DNA of 64,000 nt from Octopus bimaculoides (lineage: Eukaryota), in the NCBI RefSeq assembly GCF_001194135.2, contig NC_068991.1:77544971-77608970 (forward strand), written 5' to 3'. Below the pieces are notes generated by a model that saw nothing but the letters and a program-made list of their open reading frames with translations, had not been told where the DNA came from and ran no database searches. Shown one piece after another: positions 29,497 to 63,648 of this stretch; position 1 is the first letter of the stretch; each line of letters starts with the position of its first letter. The position numbers were made by a program, and so were the translations under genes.

Positions 29497-29910
29497 TGAG
29501 GGGAAGTCAAAAATTATCTGCACTTTTGCCATAACATGTCTTTATTATTGATAACACTGCCTTCTGTGCATGCATGCTTATAGTTGGTACTGTTGTGGTC
29601 ACATGATCAAAAATTTGAGCCTGATTGTGCCATTTTTTTTTCTGGCTTTACAGTGTAAGCATGGCTGCTCCACTAGCAATGTCCACCAAAGAAGAACAAA
29701 GATCAGTGATCCGATTTCTCTGGTCAGAAGGTGTGTCTGGTGCTGAAATTCATTGGAGGCTTTTAGCACAATATGGGGACAGTGTACTATCATGTGGAAG
29801 CATGTATGAGTGGATTGAGAAGTTTAAAAGGGGCCAGACAAGTGTGAAGTGAGAACAGGATACCCATCAACCTCCACCACTGACAAGAAGATTCAGCAGG
29901 CTGGCATAAT
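29497..29910 (+). mobile_element. mariner transposon left end + truncated transposase N-terminus (HTH)
   Basis: TA|TGAGGGGAAGTCAAAAATTATC TIR-like start; EEQRSVIRFLWSEGVSGAEIHWRLLAQYGDSVLSCGSMYEWIEKFKRGQTSV, then a stop. Confidence 0.9.
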
Positions 29911-49367: not shown

Positions 49368-49785
49368 TAGGTGACCAAGTCAGTAGTTGGGAGTAGATGC
49401 TCTGAGATCGTAGCTGCTAGAATAAGAATAGCCTGGGCAAAGTTCAGAGAGCTCCTACTTCTGCTGTTAGCAAAAGGCCATTTGCTCAGAATGAAAGGTG
49501 GACTGTATGATACATGTGTGTGAACAGCCATGCTACATGGCAGTAAAACTTGGGCTGTAACTGCTGAGGACATGCATAGGCTGGAAAGAAATGAAACTAG
49601 TATGCTCTGCTGGATGTGCAATGTCAGTGTGCATACACGACAGAGTGTAAGCACCCTGAGAAGAAAGTTGAACATAAGAAGAATCATATGTGGTGTGCAA
49701 GAGAGACGACTGCACTGGTACGGTCATGTGTTGCATATGGATGAGGACAGGTGTGTGAAGAAGTGTCACACCCTAACAGTGGCAC
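49368..49785 (+). mobile_element. RTE-clade LINE RT C-terminal fragment
   Basis: AWAKFRELL...GGLYDTCV*TAMLHGSKTWAVTAEDMHRLERNETSMLCWMCNVSVH...QERRLHWYGHVLHMDEDRCVKKC. Confidence 0.9.
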
Positions 49786-49929
49786 ATCAACACCATCTTC
49801 TCTCTCTCTTCTTTCTCTCTCAGTGTTTGTTGTCTTTCCCCCTCTCTCTCTCTCTCCTTCTGTCTCTCTGTCATAGTTTAATCTTTCCTCGCCTGGCACA
49901 GAGCCATCTTCTTCAATGGCTCTCATTCA

Positions 49930-50165
49930 CTTGATGGGTCTTTGCCTTGCAGGATACTCAGTGACCTCATTGGTGTTGGTGCTACATAAAATGCACCCAG
50001 TACACTCTGTAAAGTGGCCAGTGCTAGGAAGGGCATCCAACCATAGAAACCAGGCCAAAGCAGACACCAGTGAAGTCCTCTGGTTTTGCCAGCTGCTGAG
50101 AAAATTGTCCAACACCATGCCAGCATGGAAAACATGATAAATGGTGATGATGACCATGATGACCA
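49930..50165 (+). mobile_element. RTE-type 3'UTR/tail fragment ending in (GAT)n-like repeats
   Basis: GGAAGGGCATCCAACCATAGAAACC...CCATGCCAGCATGGAAAAC...GATGATGA. Confidence 0.7.
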
Positions 50166-53135: not shown

Positions 53136-53834
53136 ACAATTAATGTGTGATACCAAGTCAGGAACACACACACAGAGTACCTAAAGAGACTAAAATCTTA
53201 AATACCAATTAATAAATATGAGCAGTAAACGATTTCCAATTCATTGCAAAGCTTCTAATTTGCTGCATAGAATTCAGTATATATAATAATTCCATAAATA
53301 GCAACAATTTTGATTTAAGGCAGACTCGATATCCATTGCCTTTCAAGTTTATATACTAATGGCTGGTGCTATTTAGCGTCCATGCTGTTAGTTTTGCTCC
53401 TTAATAGATGAAGCATACTTGAAATCTAGAGAGAAATTAGGCAGCTTTTGTTAAGTTCCATTAAAGAGTGAAGGTGTGTGCATGTGTTATTTTATATATG
53501 TGGTTAGATTGGTGATCAAACTAAAATTGATTTTTGATTTTGCATTTCTTACATAATACAAAAAAAAGCTCTTGTATTGCACTTTGAGGGCAATACAAGG
53601 GTTTCATATATTGACCCCAGATACCTTTTTATTTGAGAAGTGTTGTCTGTCTATTCAAAGCTGCTGACATTCCGATGTAACCATGGACAGCAAGCTATGG
53701 CTATAATCTTCAAAATGATGGAAACGTTTAAAGGTTTAAAACCCTTAAAATAAAATATTCCAACAAACCTGTAAAGCCATCAATAAAATACTCATGACAT
53801 GTTCACTGAAGCATAGCCATTTGTGTCAACAAAT

Positions 53835-54016
53835 GCGGTTCTATATTTCAGAGATGAGGAATTATGTGCATTATTTACATTATTTACATTCAACGGATAT
53901 TTGTCCTCATCTTGTTTGTTGTTAACACAACATTTTGGCTGATATACCCTCCAGCCTTCATCAGGTGTCTTGGGGAAATTTCAAACCTGGGTTCTCATTC
54001 CTAAGGTATTTTTCGA

Positions 54017-54058
<42 letters not shown>

Positions 54059-54166
54059 CATCATTATTAGTTAGGTCACTGCCTGGAATCGAACTCGGAA
54101 TCTTGGGGTTAGTAGCCCATCCTCTTAACCACTAAGCTATATGCCCACGGGCATATGGCATAGTGA

Positions 54167-54246
<80 letters not shown>

Positions 54247-54386
54247 TTGAAAAATACCCTAGGAATGAGAACCCAGGTTCAAAATTTCCCCAAGACACAT
54301 GATGAAGGCTGGAGAGTATATCAGCCGAAACATTGTGTTAACAACAAACAAGATGAGGACAAATATCCGTCAAATGTAAATAATGT
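53835..54386. mobile_element. head-to-head palindrome of a tRNA-head + (AAT)n + hammerhead element (family A)
   Basis: Centre ATATGCCC-AC-GGGCATAT at about 54139-56; full tRNA-like head on the minus arm, deleted head on the plus arm; HHR motifs at 53924-53969(-) and 54294-54339(+), both with core substitutions. Confidence 0.85.
54073..54146 (-). promoter_or_regulatory. tRNA-derived internal Pol III promoter (SINE head)
   Basis: GGGCATA-TAGCTTAGTGG (A box)-TTAAGAGGATGGGCTACTAACCCCAAGATTCCGA-GTTCGATTCC (B box)-AGGCAGTGACCT. Confidence 0.8.
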
Positions 54387-54459
54387 GTTAACAAAGTTGC
54401 TATTATTTTTAAATTGTGAACAATATGGTTCAAGTCTTAAATGTTAACATCTTTTTTTA

Positions 54460-54872
54460 ACATTATTTACAGTGGACAGATAGGTGTCCTCACTGTGTTT
54501 GTTGTTATCACAACATTTTTCGGCTGATGTACTCTCCAGCCTTCATCAGGTGTTCTAGTGGAATTTTGAATCCAACTCTTTATTTGACTAATGGGGTACT
54601 ACTAACCCTTGGATTCTGAGTTCAATTTCAAGCAGAGACTTGGGAAATAATATCAACAGAAAAAATAACATCAGCAAGAAAGAATAGCTTAAGAATGAGA
54701 AGAGAGGACCCCATTAGTCAAATAAAGGGTTGGGTTCGAAATTCCACCAGGACATCTGATGAAGCCTGGAGTGTACATAAGCTGAAACGTTGTGATAACA
54801 ATAAACAAGGTGAGGACACTTGTCCATCCAAGGTAAATAATGTACAGAATTCCTCATCTCTGAAATATAGAA
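54460..54872. mobile_element. second, older head-to-head family A' palindrome
   Basis: HHR motifs at 54507-54554(-) and 54751-54796(+); inverted CCAACTCTTTATTTGACTAATGGG / CCCATTAGTCAAATAAAGGGTTGG; tRNA-head remnant CTACTAACCCTTGGATTCTGAGTTCAATTTC in the centre. Confidence 0.75.
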
Positions 54873-56659
54873 TAGTAATTACCTTTTTTGAAATAAAGTA
54901 TGGATAGTCAGAGCTGAAACATGAACCAGGCTGTAGAAAATCTACTTCAACAAATTTTGAGCCATGGAAGTGGACATTAAAAGGATGAGATGAAGATAAT
55001 GTCACAAGAATGGGTATGAAATTCACTTCATCATAACCCTGTGGCTTTTGAGTTCTATCTCAGTGTGGTACATTGGGCAAATGTTTTCTACAGTAGCCTT
55101 AGACCAAACAATGTTTTGTGAATGAAACTGGTAGATGGAAACTGTATATCAATGCGTATATGTGTGTGTGTTTTAATGTTTGCATTCTGTGTCTTTTCAT
55201 GAAACCCATCTGAGCAGAAACAATGATGTTATGTTTATATTTCCTGGTAACAAACCATCTTTTGGCTCTGAACTTTAGAAGACATGTAGAATAAGAAAAA
55301 GAAATAGCTTACTTGAAAAGCAGTTAAGGGTTAGTGAGAGGAAGGACATCCTAATTGCAAAATACAGCCTCAGGAAAAATTACCTTAAAAACAACCGAAA
55401 GTGAACTGCTTGAGCAGTTCTTCCTAATGTTTGCCTGGTTAAGTCTGCAGATACACTGAAGCATTAGCTCAGAGAAAATCTTTAAAATCAATAAAACTTA
55501 AAACAAAATTTTGTCATTTAATGATAAGCAGTCATAGAAAAGTAACATTATTTATAAATTCACTTGCCATAAGACAGTTGCCAAAATATAAATTTGGCCT
55601 CCATCAGTGATCCTTAAACAAATCATAGCAGACTTTCTTTTTCTTTTTTCTCCATTCCTGTGCTGGGCATGATGACAGCTTACTCACACGTAATCACTAC
55701 TTGTAATTCCAAATTAGGCCAAGAAACCTTGATTGGCAACAGGATAATCCTATGGAAATTCAAACACCAAAATAACCAGAAGATTGCAGCAGCAGTCCTT
55801 GTTAATTTTAAACATTGCATTCTCATTTGCCAGACAGCTGTTTGGTGTACGCTGACTCCATGTATATATAATGCCATCTGGCATACATGCTGAGATATTC
55901 CAGACACAATAGATTAAGTATTCATATTGCTATTAGAACCAACATTGATTTTTATTGCTTTCAGCAGCTTCTATCTCCTGCCCCACTTTTTCCTTTTCCT
56001 TTTTGTTATTATGATGGTTTTACTTCAAATCAAATTCTTGATAATGGCTGTGAACCCATTTAAACATTGGATGTAACATAGTTTATTAGATTTTTGAAAA
56101 GAATTTTTTTTCTTTGAAGATTCAAGAAATATGTCAGAATTTCAAAGAAAAACCAATATGAAATTTCTCAAAATGACTCACACACACAAACACGTGTCTG
56201 TATGTGCAAGTTGGAGAGAGAGAGAGAGAGGTTGTGTGTATAAATATGCATATACACACACATATATATATATAGTAGACTAAGCTTAAGAGTGTGTGAA
56301 TTATGATAATGATGGAATTTAAGTCTGTTATATTTATGAAATTAGAATCATTATAATAACATACAAACTACATAAAAGCAGAAATAATTGAAAAAATGGC
56401 ATAGAGAGAAGCATAAAAGCCATCGTTATTACAGTCTTGTTTTGTGTGAAATACCATCTTTTAAAATTATTGACACAATTTTTTTTTAAATAATTACAAG
56501 CAAATAAATGAAAGCAAAAATATAATTCATTTGACAATTATCTGGATAAGACTTTATGTCTGAATGTTTTTAAATATACATGTCATAATATTTACGCATG
56601 GCTGTATATTCAAAAGTATGCACTCATGCATAAATACATGTATACATAGATGCACGAAT

Positions 56660-57065
56660 GACTGTGTAATAAGAAGTTTTGCTTCCAAATCATATGGTTC
56701 CAGGTTCAGTCCTGTTGCTTGGCACCTGGGGCAAATGTCTTCTGGGCTCACCAAAGGCTTGTGAGTGAATTTTGGCACATGGAAACGAGAAGAAGCCTCT
56801 TTATTTATTTATATATGTATATGGATGTGTGTGTTTTAGTCTTGTTGCCTCAACATTGTATAATGGTTGTAAATGCATGTCACAGTCATGGCAAGTGGTA
56901 TCCTTCATTTAAAATCTTCCATGAAAACATGTCTGGCCATGGGGGATGGGGACAGGTGAGGGTTGGTGACAGGAAGAGCATTTGGCTGTAGAAAATGTAC
57001 TTCAACTAACTTCCTTCCAGTCCACGTAACCATGGCAAAATGGATGTTTAAATAATGGTGATGAT
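56660..57065 (+). mobile_element. SINE family Y copy with RTE-like tail
   Basis: GACTGTGTAATAAGAAG...GGTTCCAGGTTCAGTCC head; tail CCATGGCAAAATGGATGTTAAAATAATGGTGATGA. Confidence 0.75.
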
Positions 57066-57899: not shown

Positions 57900-58322
57900 A
57901 TGAGTGAAGGGATCAAAGGAGAAAAAATGGAAGAATGAGAAAGAAAGAAAAAAAGAAAGAAGGACTGAGTTGAGAGATGGAGAGTGGAGGAAGAGATATA
58001 AGAAAGGTGGAGGTGATAACTGACCAGTGAAGGAAAATAATGTGCTATCTTGTAACCTATGGTACTCTTTTGTCTGTCTTCATTCAATGTCTGTAGAGAA
58101 AGTCTGCTTGGTCATACTTATCCCCCATTCCACACATAAGAATAGTTGAACTCACCATTGTGTCTCATAAAAACATCAGTTAAACACCTATCTCTGCCTG
58201 ATGGTCTAAGATATTTCATATATGGTCATGGACATAATAGAATGGTACTTCAGTAACAAGAGACAAACTATATGCTCTTTATTTACATTTGACGGATATT
58301 GGTCCTCATCTTGTTTGTTGTT

Positions 58323-58368
58323 AACACAACGTTTCAGCTGATACACCCTCCAGCCTTCATCAGGTGTC
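58323..58368 (-). ncRNA. minimal hammerhead ribozyme, family A, intact core
   Basis: GACAC-CUGAUGA-A-GGCUGG agggugua UCAGCU-GAAAC-GUU^GUGUU; stem III is the palindrome ACGU (dimer type). Confidence 0.75.
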
Positions 58369-58415
58369 TTGGGGAAATTTCAAACCTGGGTTCTCATTCC
58401 TAAGGTATCTTTTGA

Positions 58416-58477
<62 letters not shown>

Positions 58478-58640
58478 NNNNNNNNNNNNNNNNNNNNNNN
58501 NNNNNNNNNNNNNNNNNNNNNNNNNNNNNNNNNNNNNNNNNNNNNNNNNNNNNNNNNNNNNNNNNNNNNNNNNNNNNNNNNNNNNNNNNNNNNNNNNNNN
58601 NNNNNNNNNNNNNNNNNNNNNNNNNNNNNNNNNNNNNNNN

Positions 58641-58674
<34 letters not shown>

Positions 58675-58721
58675 TAAAAAAATACCTTAGGAATGAGAAT
58701 CCAGGTTCAAAATTTCCCCAA

Positions 58722-58767
58722 GACACCTGATGAAGGCTGGAGGGTATATCAGCTGAAACGTTGTGTT
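58722..58767 (+). ncRNA. minimal hammerhead ribozyme, family A, intact core
   Basis: GACAC-CUGAUGA(58727-33)-A-GGCUGG aggguaua UCAGCU-GAAAC(58755-59)-GUU^GUGUU. Confidence 0.75.
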
Positions 58768-58894
58768 AACAACAAACAAGATGAGGACGAATATCCGTCA
58801 AATGTAAATTATGTAAATAATGTACATAATTCCTCAGCTCTTAAATATAGAACTGTACATGCTCTTTACATGGCAGTCTAACATTCTTGTCTGC

Positions 58895-61962: not shown

Positions 61963-62944
61963 TACATACATACATGTGTGTGCGTGCATACTCATAAATT
62001 ACCTATATATATATACACACGCAGGATACACAGACACATGATTGCAAACTGAACTAATGGAAACATAGACGAAGCATAAAAAACTAACGAGGAGGTTAAT
62101 AGTCCAGAAATTTTAAATTATTATCATGAATAACTCATCTAAAGTATTTAAGCATGTAATATTGGAATAATTTATATGTAGATATTATTGTTATTTGATG
62201 AATAATTGCCAGCACAGAGAGAAGTTAGCTCCTGGCAAACTGAGTCTACAGAAGACCATTCCATTCCTAGTCAGAGCTTCATTGCTTCTCTTGAAATGAT
62301 AACACTCTTAAGGTATAAATGTCTCAGTTATTTCAGTTGCCATTTCCTTAGAAATCTTAGCTTTTGCACCTAATCGGGTGAATTCTGATTTCTTTTGAAA
62401 TGGTATCAAACCTGCCAACATCGGCACCATCTGTTGATTATCTCCCTCTTTTCGTTTTTTGCTATGTTGAAGGAACATATTTCATTGAATCAACAACCAA
62501 ACTTTGTTAATTTCTAAAGCTATGAGTATTAATTACTGGTACTTCTTAATTGAGTGGCTTCTATAGTGTAGAAGCAAATTAAGGCCTTGCATAAAGTAAC
62601 ATTTGGAATCCAAGGAAACTGGCAGTGGTGTGCATCATCAAATTCCAATCCATAAATGTTTATAAAAGAAAGCAAAAATTGTAGTGAACCAATTTACTGA
62701 TTCTGTACACATGTAGATGAATCTTATAGTTTACCACATGTCTAAATGTCAGCATTTAGATGAGTTTACATATTGATTAAGGTTAAAAACATTTGTTGAT
62801 AGTACAGTACATACACCACTTAGAGTAAAACCAAACCCTTTCAGATCAATATAGATTGTATAGATTAATATAGATTAATACATAGCATATGTAGAAGAGA
62901 TTAAGGCAAGGAAATCATTTTGAACTGAATAGAATAGTATCGTT

Positions 62945-63293
62945 GTGGCACTCCGTCGGTTATGACGATGAGGGTTCCAGTTGATCCGATCAATGGAACA
63001 GCCTGCTTGTGAAATTAACGTGCAAGTGGCTGAGCACTCCACAGACACGTGTACCCTTAATGTAGTTTTCAGGATGACACAAAGTGTGACAAAGCTGGCC
63101 CTTTGAAATAGAGGAAGAAAGAGTGTGAGAAAATTGTGGTGAAAGAGTACAGCAGGGTTTGCCTCCACCACCCCTTGCTGGAGCCTCGTGGAGCTTTTAT
63201 GTGTTTGTGCCCAATAAACACTCACAACGCCCAGTCTGGAAATTGAAACTATGATCCTATGACCACGAGTCTGCTGCCCTAACCACTGGGTCA
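62945..63293 (-). mobile_element. tRNA-derived SINE family X, near full length
   Basis: Reverse complement aligns to 412-779 (TGACCCAGTGGTTAGGGCAGCAGACTCGTGGTC...). Confidence 0.85.
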
Positions 63294-63648
63294 CATAGAT
63301 TAAGTGAGAGACAATTGTGCTGGTATGTAAATAGTAAGGTGTATAATACTAGATTGAATGGCAATATTATTTACTTACATGTGAGTAACTATAGTAATGA
63401 ACTAGAAATATAGTTTTACTAGCAAATGCTCTTTAAACAACCTGCTCTTTCTGTGAATAATAAGATCAGAGAAATGTTAAGACAAAAAAAGATAGACTGG
63501 CTGTTTAGACAAGCAGTATAATGATCACCCTAGCACGGGGATCGCATTGGTATGGATGAAATATTGCACGATTGATAGGGACTGCCAGTCTTTCCATTCT
63601 CTAATTGAAGAATTAATCTTGTAGTGATGCCTAGCATTTATTAAGGAA

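Follow-up and report, generated by a model that had tools for sequence, protein, structure and literature searches.

The question raised by this locus is how a short retroelement that joins a transfer RNA (tRNA)-like head to a hammerhead ribozyme motif came to lie in the genome of Octopus bimaculoides as a head-to-head palindrome, and which machinery inserted it. The window consists of 64,000 nucleotides of contig NC_068991.1 (NCBI RefSeq assembly GCF_001194135.2, positions 77,544,971 to 77,608,970 of the forward strand), and all coordinates given below without a contig name are positions of this stretch. An earlier inspection, called here the sequence-only reading, had described a single short interspersed nuclear element (SINE) at 53835-54386, with a hammerhead of the type known from Penelope-like elements (PLEs). 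The element is probably a member of a family of tRNA-derived SINEs with a 3' module from a PLE, mobilised by PLE reverse transcriptase and endonuclease, and its palindromic form was probably made at insertion.

Palindromic copies and their insertion boundaries

Three copies of the element were found in the window, A (53834-54386), B (54458-54882) and C (58282-58858), with total lengths of 425-577 bp, and each of them was a head-to-head palindrome. Read outward from the centre, the arms consist of a tRNA-like head, an A-rich or (AAT)n stretch, a linker, a minimal type I hammerhead and a 3' module. The inverted repeat of copy A (53877-54069 / 54194-54386) has arms of 193 nt that are 88% complementary. 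Copies A and C form one subfamily, the arms of A being 92% identical to each other and 93-94.5% identical to the arms of C. Copy B is ~80% identical to A and C and differs by a 32-nt insertion in the linker and by an A-rich stretch instead of a pure microsatellite. In the arm alignment, 8 of the 14 variable sites carried CpG-type changes. The use of arm-to-arm divergence as a clock was rejected; the arms of A were no closer to each other than to those of C, and one template could not be distinguished from two. Searches of the 64 kb with nhmmer and blastn, using all six arms as queries, gave no further copies, the additional matches being unrelated AAT microsatellites.

The sequence-only reading had thus described the palindrome and the order of its arms correctly. 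Its single insertion is real and corresponds to copy A, while copies B and C had been overlooked. The deletion in the head of the plus arm was also recovered (53 nt are missing between two AGTG copies), as were the two core mutations of copy A, AAAAT for GAAAC and ATGATGA for CTGATGA. A perfectly palindromic ancestor, as proposed there, is conceivable for the inner part at most, since symmetry was never present at the outer ends.

Copy A is flanked by a 9-bp duplication, GTCAACAAA / GTTAACAAA, which matches at 8 of 9 positions and abuts the outer ends of the element. Copy C is flanked on both sides by ATGCTCTTTA (10/10). The target-site duplications of the three copies are AT-rich and vary in length (9, 7 and 10 bp). 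Since the duplications abut the whole palindrome, each palindrome was inserted as one unit, heads included. The variable length of the duplications points to reverse transcription at a staggered break and not to a transposase.

The outer ends of the copies are asymmetric, which the sequence-only reading had not noticed. In all three copies one arm is short and ends 46-52 nt past the hammerhead cleavage site, at ...GTAAATAA(TGT). The other arm is long and ends 91-96 nt past the cleavage site, the extra 39-50 nt containing ...ACATAATTCCTCATCTCTGAAATATAGAAC... The inner ends differ from copy to copy. At the centre of copy A both arms start at the same nucleotide (GGGCAT...) and are separated by 2 bases (ATATGCCC-AC-GGGCATAT), as would be expected from two full-length cDNAs of an RNA beginning at the head. 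In copy B both arms are 5'-truncated; one breaks off within the linker, the other within the anticodon-arm region of the head, and the two meet in a 6-nt microhomology (ATGGGG, 54591-54596).

These boundaries were compared with those of PLE insertions. PLE copies often carry an inverted copy, 5'-truncated or full, at the 5' end, together with a 30-40 bp tail that is often present at only one end (PMC8557442); the tail has also been described in PMC11167929, and such inverted structures are known to break assemblies (PMC8557442). The purified PLE protein of the anole cleaves and extends both DNA strands in vitro and prefers AT-rich targets. It begins reverse transcription on uncleaved RNA, from two internal sites that lie next to each other with the tail between them (PMC11167929). 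The octopus copies resemble the insertions analysed by Craig et al. (2021, PMC8557442) and Frangieh et al. (2024, PMC11167929) in the inverted 5' copy, the one-sided tail and the AT-rich targets, and also in the two start sites of reverse transcription, the unprocessed RNA template and the assembly breaks. They differ from PLEs in that the unit is only ~300 nt long, lacks a reading frame and a tandem of pseudo-long terminal repeats (pLTRs) and starts at a tRNA-like head, and the tail of 39-50 nt is slightly longer than that of PLEs. Inverted copy, one-sided tail and variable AT-rich duplications taken together make insertion by PLE machinery the best reading of the boundaries.

Minimal hammerhead and tRNA-like head

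After restoration of CpG sites, the consensus of the six arms reads GACAC CUGAUGA A GGCUGG (8-nt loop) UCAGCC GAAAC GUU^ GUGUU, where ^ marks the cleavage site. Helix I (GACAC/GUGUU) comprises 5 bp, and position 17 is a U. Helix II (GGCUGG/UCAGCC) comprises 6 bp and is preceded by an unpaired A. Its G10.1-C11.1 pair is present in three of the six arms and in a solo relative from outside the window (L001, see below); in the other three arms it is a G-U pair owing to a C-to-T change at a CpG. Helix III is restricted to A15.1-C-G-U16.1, has no loop and contains the palindromic pair C15.2-G16.2. Helices I and II are both contained in the minimum-energy fold of the consensus. Minimal hammerheads of PLEs are characterised by CUGANGA and GAAA boxes, a position H17 that is not G, no or only a minimal helix III with palindromic positions 15.2-16.2, a 6-bp helix II with G10.1-C11.1 and an unpaired base before it, and a helix I of 4-5 bp (PMC4209133). 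The octopus motif agrees with every one of these published features, which supports the assignment to the Penelope type by the sequence-only reading. A consensus without the core or stem I had been named there as a finding that would speak against the idea; the CUGAUGA and GAAAC boxes and the 5-bp helix I were all present in the consensus of the six arms.

The core 16-mer CTGATGAAGGCTGGAG occurred six times in the window with at most one mismatch, compared with 0.33 occurrences expected by chance at the 3-mismatch tolerance of the search. A strict descriptor was defined as CUGANGA, an optional bulge, helix II of at least 4 bp, GAAA, a palindromic helix III of 2-6 nt, U, H17 and helix I of at least 4 bp. 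It matched twice in the window, once in each arm of copy C, and not at all in 200 shuffled sequences. The Rfam hammerhead models gave no match, neither at the gathering threshold nor at a permissive E-value. Since the motif is minimal and has no helix III of the usual kind, no such match was expected, and its absence does not count as evidence against a hammerhead.

All six arms depart from the consensus hammerhead, mostly by changes of the CpG-transition type. Both core boxes were kept only in copy C, where they are present in both arms and C11.1 is changed to U. The arms of copies A and B carry changes that are predicted to be inactivating (Table 1). The free energy of helix III formed in trans is small, with -1.7 kcal/mol for ACGU and -3.5 kcal/mol for AACGUU. 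Cofolding of the dimer was discarded, as the method cannot represent a helix III formed in trans. Minimal hammerheads are known for low activity in vitro, and cleavage assisted by protein has been reported for the anole PLE (PMC4209133, PMC11167929); the weak helix in trans agrees with both observations. All six arms contain sequence from upstream of the cleavage site, and the ribozyme had therefore not cut the RNAs that served as templates. As cleavage would separate the head from the part that is copied, the hammerhead probably does not serve the SINE as a processing device but came along with the recognition module as a passenger.

The tRNA-like head was analysed on the minus arm of copy A. 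An A box (TAGCTTAGTGG, 54129-54139) and a B box (AGTTCGATTCC, 54085-54095) lie on the same strand in the correct order, 44 nt apart; in the whole 64 kb the A box pattern matched four times and the B box pattern twice. Counted from the first nucleotide of the arm, the A box begins at position 8, exactly where it begins in a tRNA. ARAGORN called no tRNA. By its sequence the head is a tRNA derivative that has decayed, the usual state of SINE heads, rather than a tRNA gene. The internal boxes would direct transcription by RNA polymerase III (Pol III), for which the lack of internal TTTT and the position of the palindrome centre at head position 1 are indirect evidence. The sense strand contains no TTTT in any of the six arms, which the sequence-only reading had stated for the stretch between head and ribozyme of copy A, and T runs lie just outside two of the six arms.

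The head fragment of copy B is 80% identical to the head of copy A over 41 nt (E 3e-5). The head is therefore joined to the ribozyme module in two diverged subfamilies. This fragment, on the long arm, has no A box and begins in the anticodon-arm region; the short arm of copy B is headless. On the plus arm of copy A the B box is missing because it was removed by the 53-nt deletion. A head that is only occasionally adjacent to the ribozyme had been considered a sign of chance nesting; the head was found in the subfamilies of both A and B, inside the target-site duplications. These sequences support the view that the tRNA-like head belongs to the mobile unit and is not a chance neighbour.

Proposed mobilisation by PLE machinery and alternative explanations

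A mechanism that would produce such copies can be formulated as follows. Pol III would start at the tRNA-like head and transcribe the whole arm, from the A-rich or (AAU)n stretch across linker and minimal hammerhead into the 3' module. This module would be bound by a PLE protein, probably in dimeric form, which would nick both strands of an AT-rich target 7-10 bp apart, and each 3'-OH would prime reverse transcription of a separate RNA copy. On one strand, synthesis would start ~50 nt past the hammerhead cleavage site, and on the other strand ~40-50 nt further downstream, which would leave the one-sided tail. Both cDNAs would run toward the 5' end of the RNA or stop short of it; their ends would pair over a few bases and be filled in. 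The product would consist of flank, antisense arm (tail to head), sense arm (head to tail) and flank, with a target-site duplication. The hammerhead would have been inherited together with the PLE module and would need a partner or a protein for cleavage.

The sequence-only reading had likewise proposed a non-autonomous Pol III element that parasitises PLE machinery. The insertion signature fits this proposal, and an autonomous partner was not found. The latter result and several others weigh against mobilisation by PLE machinery. The window contains no autonomous PLE, as neither a reverse transcriptase nor a GIY-YIG reading frame was detected. A wider search for a partner was performed with the peptide translated from the AUG inside CUGAUGA, chosen because the reading frame of the anole PLE starts there. 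Among 1.8 billion protein representatives, this query matched only short frames (SINE copies, the solo relative and tandem arrays) and no PLE or reverse transcriptase protein. Two-strand priming of the palindromes is extrapolated from PMC11167929 and would go beyond what was demonstrated in that paper. The head is only weakly tRNA-like, the Rfam tRNA model reaching 14.6 bits (gathering score 29; E 0.94 in a 106-nt search; model positions 8-63). Its adjacency to the ribozyme rests on copies A and B, because the centre of copy C is an assembly gap. The candidate duplication of copy B is a weak 7-mer of low complexity (CTTTTTT, 54451-54457 / 54883-54889). In an alignment of seven hammerheads, 88% of the cells were paired and helices I and II showed no compensatory change; the shuffle control was uninformative. 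The sample of arms was small, comprising the six arms of the window and one relative from outside. Folding of the 3' module gave a long-range stem of 9-10 bp (AGAUGAGGA/UCCUCAUCU) around the end point of the short arm; its stability was not significant (z -1.0 to -1.6), and it was not relied on.

The result on the partner would also agree with an ordinary tRNA-SINE mobilised by a long interspersed nuclear element (LINE), in which the motif is only hammerhead-like and the palindromes were generated by twin priming or by later rearrangement. The majority of SINEs depend on LINE tails, RTE, CR1 and Dong-R4 LINEs abound in octopus genomes (PMC13282606), and the window contains a LINE fragment at a distance of 4 kb. 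However, twin priming inverts adjacent segments; it does not duplicate one segment in inverted orientation, nor does it account for the two classes of ends. The same asymmetry of the ends in all three copies (~50 versus ~95 nt) is a specific signature of PLEs (PMC8557442, PMC11167929), and the motif has every feature of the minimal PLE hammerhead (PMC4209133). No tail shared with the element was present among the LINE sequence of the window, and mobilisation by a LINE was considered unlikely. A foldback or MITE-type (miniature inverted-repeat) DNA transposon whose arms resemble a SINE and a hammerhead would account for long inverted arms within 425-577 bp and for duplications of 7-10 bp. The extreme termini are not inverted repeats, though, as one end has 39-50 nt that are absent from the other. 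The duplications vary in length (9, 7, 10 bp), and the inner junctions differ between full heads in copy A and two truncation points in copy B, which is typical of 5' truncation during reverse transcription. We regard a transposon of this kind as very improbable.

The sequence-only reading had given the palindrome itself a function, two divergent Pol III transcripts supplying each other with the dimer partner for the ACGU helix III. Helix III consists of nothing more than the self-complementary ACGU (AACGUU), so that cleavage should need a second copy (PMC4209133), and both arms, read outward, give the same sense RNA. Yet dimerisation would work just as well between transcripts of any two copies in the genome, and the helix in trans is weak at the energies given above. 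Cleavage, which lies upstream of the start sites of reverse transcription, would cut the head off the copied part, which is of no obvious use to a SINE. The six arms all stem from uncleaved RNA, and the one-sided tail would be left unexplained. Copies A and B cannot yield two Pol III transcripts each, because the plus arm of A has no B box, the long arm of B has no A box and the short arm of B is headless. A selected dimer device was thus rated as distinctly unlikely, and the palindrome is more simply explained as a by-product of insertion. Finally, PLE endonuclease favours ATT-rich and microsatellite targets (PMC11167929, PMC8557442), and (AAT)n lies between head and ribozyme module in copies A and C; a non-autonomous PLE fragment could therefore have nested by chance in the (AAT)n tail of an unrelated short tRNA-SINE. 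The same order of elements was found, however, in both subfamilies, despite a divergence of ~20% and a 32-nt indel between them, and the duplications enclose the whole palindrome with its heads, while none surrounds the ribozyme module alone. Chance nesting as an account of the present copies has hardly any probability in our view. The chimeric family may well have originated in this way, however, when a PLE fragment entered the (AAT)n tail of a small SINE in the past.

Mobilisation by PLE machinery remains the preferred explanation and was compared with known systems. In Schistosoma, the SINE-like, hammerhead-bearing elements Sm-alpha and Sj-alpha (Ferbeyre et al. 1998; Laha et al. 2000; cited in PMC2770079) are the closest tRNA-derived counterparts, and thousands of Sm-alpha copies were called as tRNA-Gln pseudogenes. 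They share with the octopus element the short non-autonomous retroposon structure, the tRNA-derived head, a type I hammerhead and a high copy number. The hammerhead of Sm-alpha is of canonical type I and is recognised by Rfam, whereas the octopus motif is minimal, without helix III and invisible to Rfam. An inverted copy and a one-sided tail do not form part of the Sm-alpha accounts in the papers examined, and the hosts are a flatworm and a cephalopod mollusc, respectively.

In each of its features the ribozyme has the architecture of the minimal PLE hammerheads of Cervera and de la Pena (2014, PMC4209133). Dispersed copies of those motifs outnumber the ones in full PLEs, and pairs on opposite strands 100-700 bp apart occur in S. 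mansoni (PMC4209133). They were read as pLTRs or truncated PLEs, in contrast to the octopus element, and their descriptions include no upstream tRNA-like head of the Pol III type. Animal non-LTR retrozymes (PMC7229834; bioRxiv 10.64898/2026.07.22.740005) are, like the octopus element, non-autonomous and hammerhead-bearing, and their dependence on PLEs has been proposed (PMC7229834, PMC7761336, bioRxiv 10.64898/2026.07.22.740005). Retrozymes consist of tandem repeats and form circular RNAs, whereas the octopus copies are dispersed, flanked by duplications and palindromic, with a Pol III-type head. No head-to-tail tandem arrangement, by which retrozymes are recognised, was detected in the window, where the copies are inverted pairs. 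Short non-autonomous Penelope elements have been reported (PMC6685494). Surveys of octopus repeats list many unclassified SINEs and recently active Penelope families and do not mention hammerheads (PMC13282606, PMC8967140). A text search of the literature for the sequences of the element retrieved no paper.

The suggestion of the sequence-only reading that the combination had not been described was overstated, as Sm-alpha and Sj-alpha (PMC2770079), the opposite-strand pairs (PMC4209133) and the one-sided tails (PMC8557442) precede it. A Pol III head, a PLE-type minimal hammerhead and the full signature of PLE insertion were not found together in the literature examined, and each of these components is known. 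That the Pol III head with its Penelope-like 3' module represents the first clearly documented SINE class of this kind, and that the copies record symmetric two-strand, target-primed reverse transcription by a PLE dimer on two RNA templates, is put forward tentatively.

SINEs are defined by borrowing the tails of LINEs. A SINE that borrows a Penelope-like tail would widen this rule, and for PLE biology the element would serve as a reporter of insertion that is small, abundant and easy to align. The palindromes bear on the finding that PLE protein primes on two strands from two start sites in vitro, and templates of uncleaved RNA bear on the role of PLE hammerheads. The family may also help to classify many of the unclassified octopus SINEs. 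If the explanation is correct and the family is abundant, SINEs driven by PLEs could account for part of the large, mostly unclassified and octopus-specific SINE expansion.

Relatives, annotation and other features of the window

The positions of the element parts are listed in Table 1.

Table 1. Parts of the palindromic copies A, B and C, with positions in the window (strand: + or -, a point where none applies)
Feature	Position	Strand	Remark
Copy A, left target-site duplication GTCAACAAA	53825..53833	.	8/9 match to GTTAACAAA, abuts element end
Copy A, one-sided tail of long arm, 43 nt (…AAATAATGCACATAATTCCTCATCTCTGAAATATAGAACCGCA)	53834..53876	-	In the long arms of A, B and C; in no short arm
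Copy A, minimal hammerhead of long arm	53924..53969	-	Predicted inactive (G12 to A, C15.2 to U; CpG-type)
Copy A, internal (AAT)n microsatellite of long arm	54019..54069	-	
Copy A, full tRNA-like head of long arm	54073..54146	-	A box 54129-54139, B box 54085-54095
Copy A, centre	54147..54148	.	2-nt spacer AC between head 5' ends, ATATGCCC-AC-GGGCATAT
Copy A, head remnant of short arm, GGGCATATGGCATAGTGACC	54149..54168	+	53 nt gone between AGTG copies, B box lost
Copy A, (AAT)n(AAC)n microsatellite of short arm	54171..54246	+	
Copy A, minimal hammerhead of short arm	54294..54339	+	Predicted inactive (C3 and G16.2 both changed to A)
Copy A, right target-site duplication GTTAACAAA	54387..54395	.	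Short arm ends at 54386, 52 nt past cleavage site
Copy B, short arm	54458..54596	-	5'-truncated in linker, without head; hammerhead 54507-54554 with 2-nt insertion in GAAAC
Copy B, long arm	54591..54882	+	Head fragment 54591-54641; hammerhead 54751-54796 (damaged stem II); tail 54844-54882
Copy C, left target-site duplication ATGCTCTTTA	58272..58281	.	10/10 identical to 58859-58868
Copy C, short arm	58282..58478	-	Hammerhead 58323-58368, both core boxes intact, G10.1-U11.1
Copy C, centre	58479..58640	.	Assembly gap (N), heads unreadable
Copy C, long arm	58641..58858	+	Hammerhead 58722-58767, core boxes intact; tail ~58815-58858
Copy C, right target-site duplication ATGCTCTTTA	58859..58868	.	

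Copies A and B are separate insertions 71 bp apart (54396-54450), and their short arms face each other. This closeness may be due to chance or to a preference of PLEs for insertion near earlier copies. One CpG of the linker (54295-54296 / 53967-53968 and the equivalents in copy C) appears as TG on one arm and as CA on the other, in arm orientation. The pattern in palindromes A and C indicates that both arms lost the C on the same genomic strand; with two cases it is not significant.

Relatives of the element were found outside the window. Peptides translated from it, like the LINE fragment of the window, matched entries of O. bimaculoides, which points to an octopod host, and the element was present in three protein entries of this species, namely A0A0L8FV75 (UniProt), dystrobrevin beta isoform X1 and LOC128249831 isoform X2. 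The solo relative L001 (positions 9981-10123 of the 35.7-kb contig ENA ERZ21867824 ctg85134l) contains a diverged module, recovered by nhmmer with E ~1e-10 (CTGATGAAGGCCGG...TTAGCCGAAACGTT). Six proteins from ENA and NCBI contigs of 0.7-222 kb translate tandem arrays of a related module with a period of 43-44 residues (~130 nt). Their motif is HL[MK]KAG.HI.RNVVEITIKMKT..., in which the alternation of M and K reflects the one free position of CUGANGA. Judging from their sequence, these arrays look like the retrozyme type. The part conserved across the A/C subfamily, copy B, L001 and the arrays was the hammerhead together with ~30 nt downstream of it. Pattern scans of metagenome DNA gave no match at first and later one chance match inside a GC-rich bacterial gene. 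The contigs of the LINE-like matches were also scanned and contained no copy of the element.

Some further details of these relatives were recorded. In L001 a B-box-like sequence (GATTCAATCC) lies ~170 nt upstream of the module, and helix I is unpaired. Pieces of the element are annotated as coding in the O. bimaculoides accessions XP_052825882.1, XP_052830334.1 and A0A0L8FV75. The first exon of dystrobrevin beta isoform X1, and with it the N-terminus, consists of head and ribozyme module (MPMGIWHSGEGWRVYQPKCC...), and its back-translation is compatible with another head-to-head centre, ATGCCC-ATGGGCAT. LOC128249831 isoform X2 begins at the AUG inside CUGAUGA. The element explains some assembly gaps, and pieces of it have already been annotated as first exons in O. 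bimaculoides gene models.

Runs of N are located at ~17.4-18.2, 31.4-31.7, 48.2-48.5 and 52.6 kb and at 58479-58640, most of them bordered by TA, CA or AAT microsatellites. The assembly is broken up at simple repeats, and again in the middle of palindrome C. An open frame at 29625-29849 (+) encodes an HTH_48 domain of the Mos1-type transposase (E 4e-5, at the Pfam cutoff) and represents a mariner-like remnant. At 49371-49934 (+) a C-terminal fragment of a LINE reverse transcriptase is encoded, which is 72-76% identical to a protein of O. bimaculoides and to one from an ENA contig and had no Pfam match. At least two other repeat families recur in the window and were recognised by recurring translated motifs, one with ...AQWLGQ.TRG... 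(334-918, 12223-12447 and 62878-63348) and the other with ...CSGTE..WLGSKLLTTQ... (21943-22612, 26278-26553 and 56557-56808). Both are probably other octopus SINEs.

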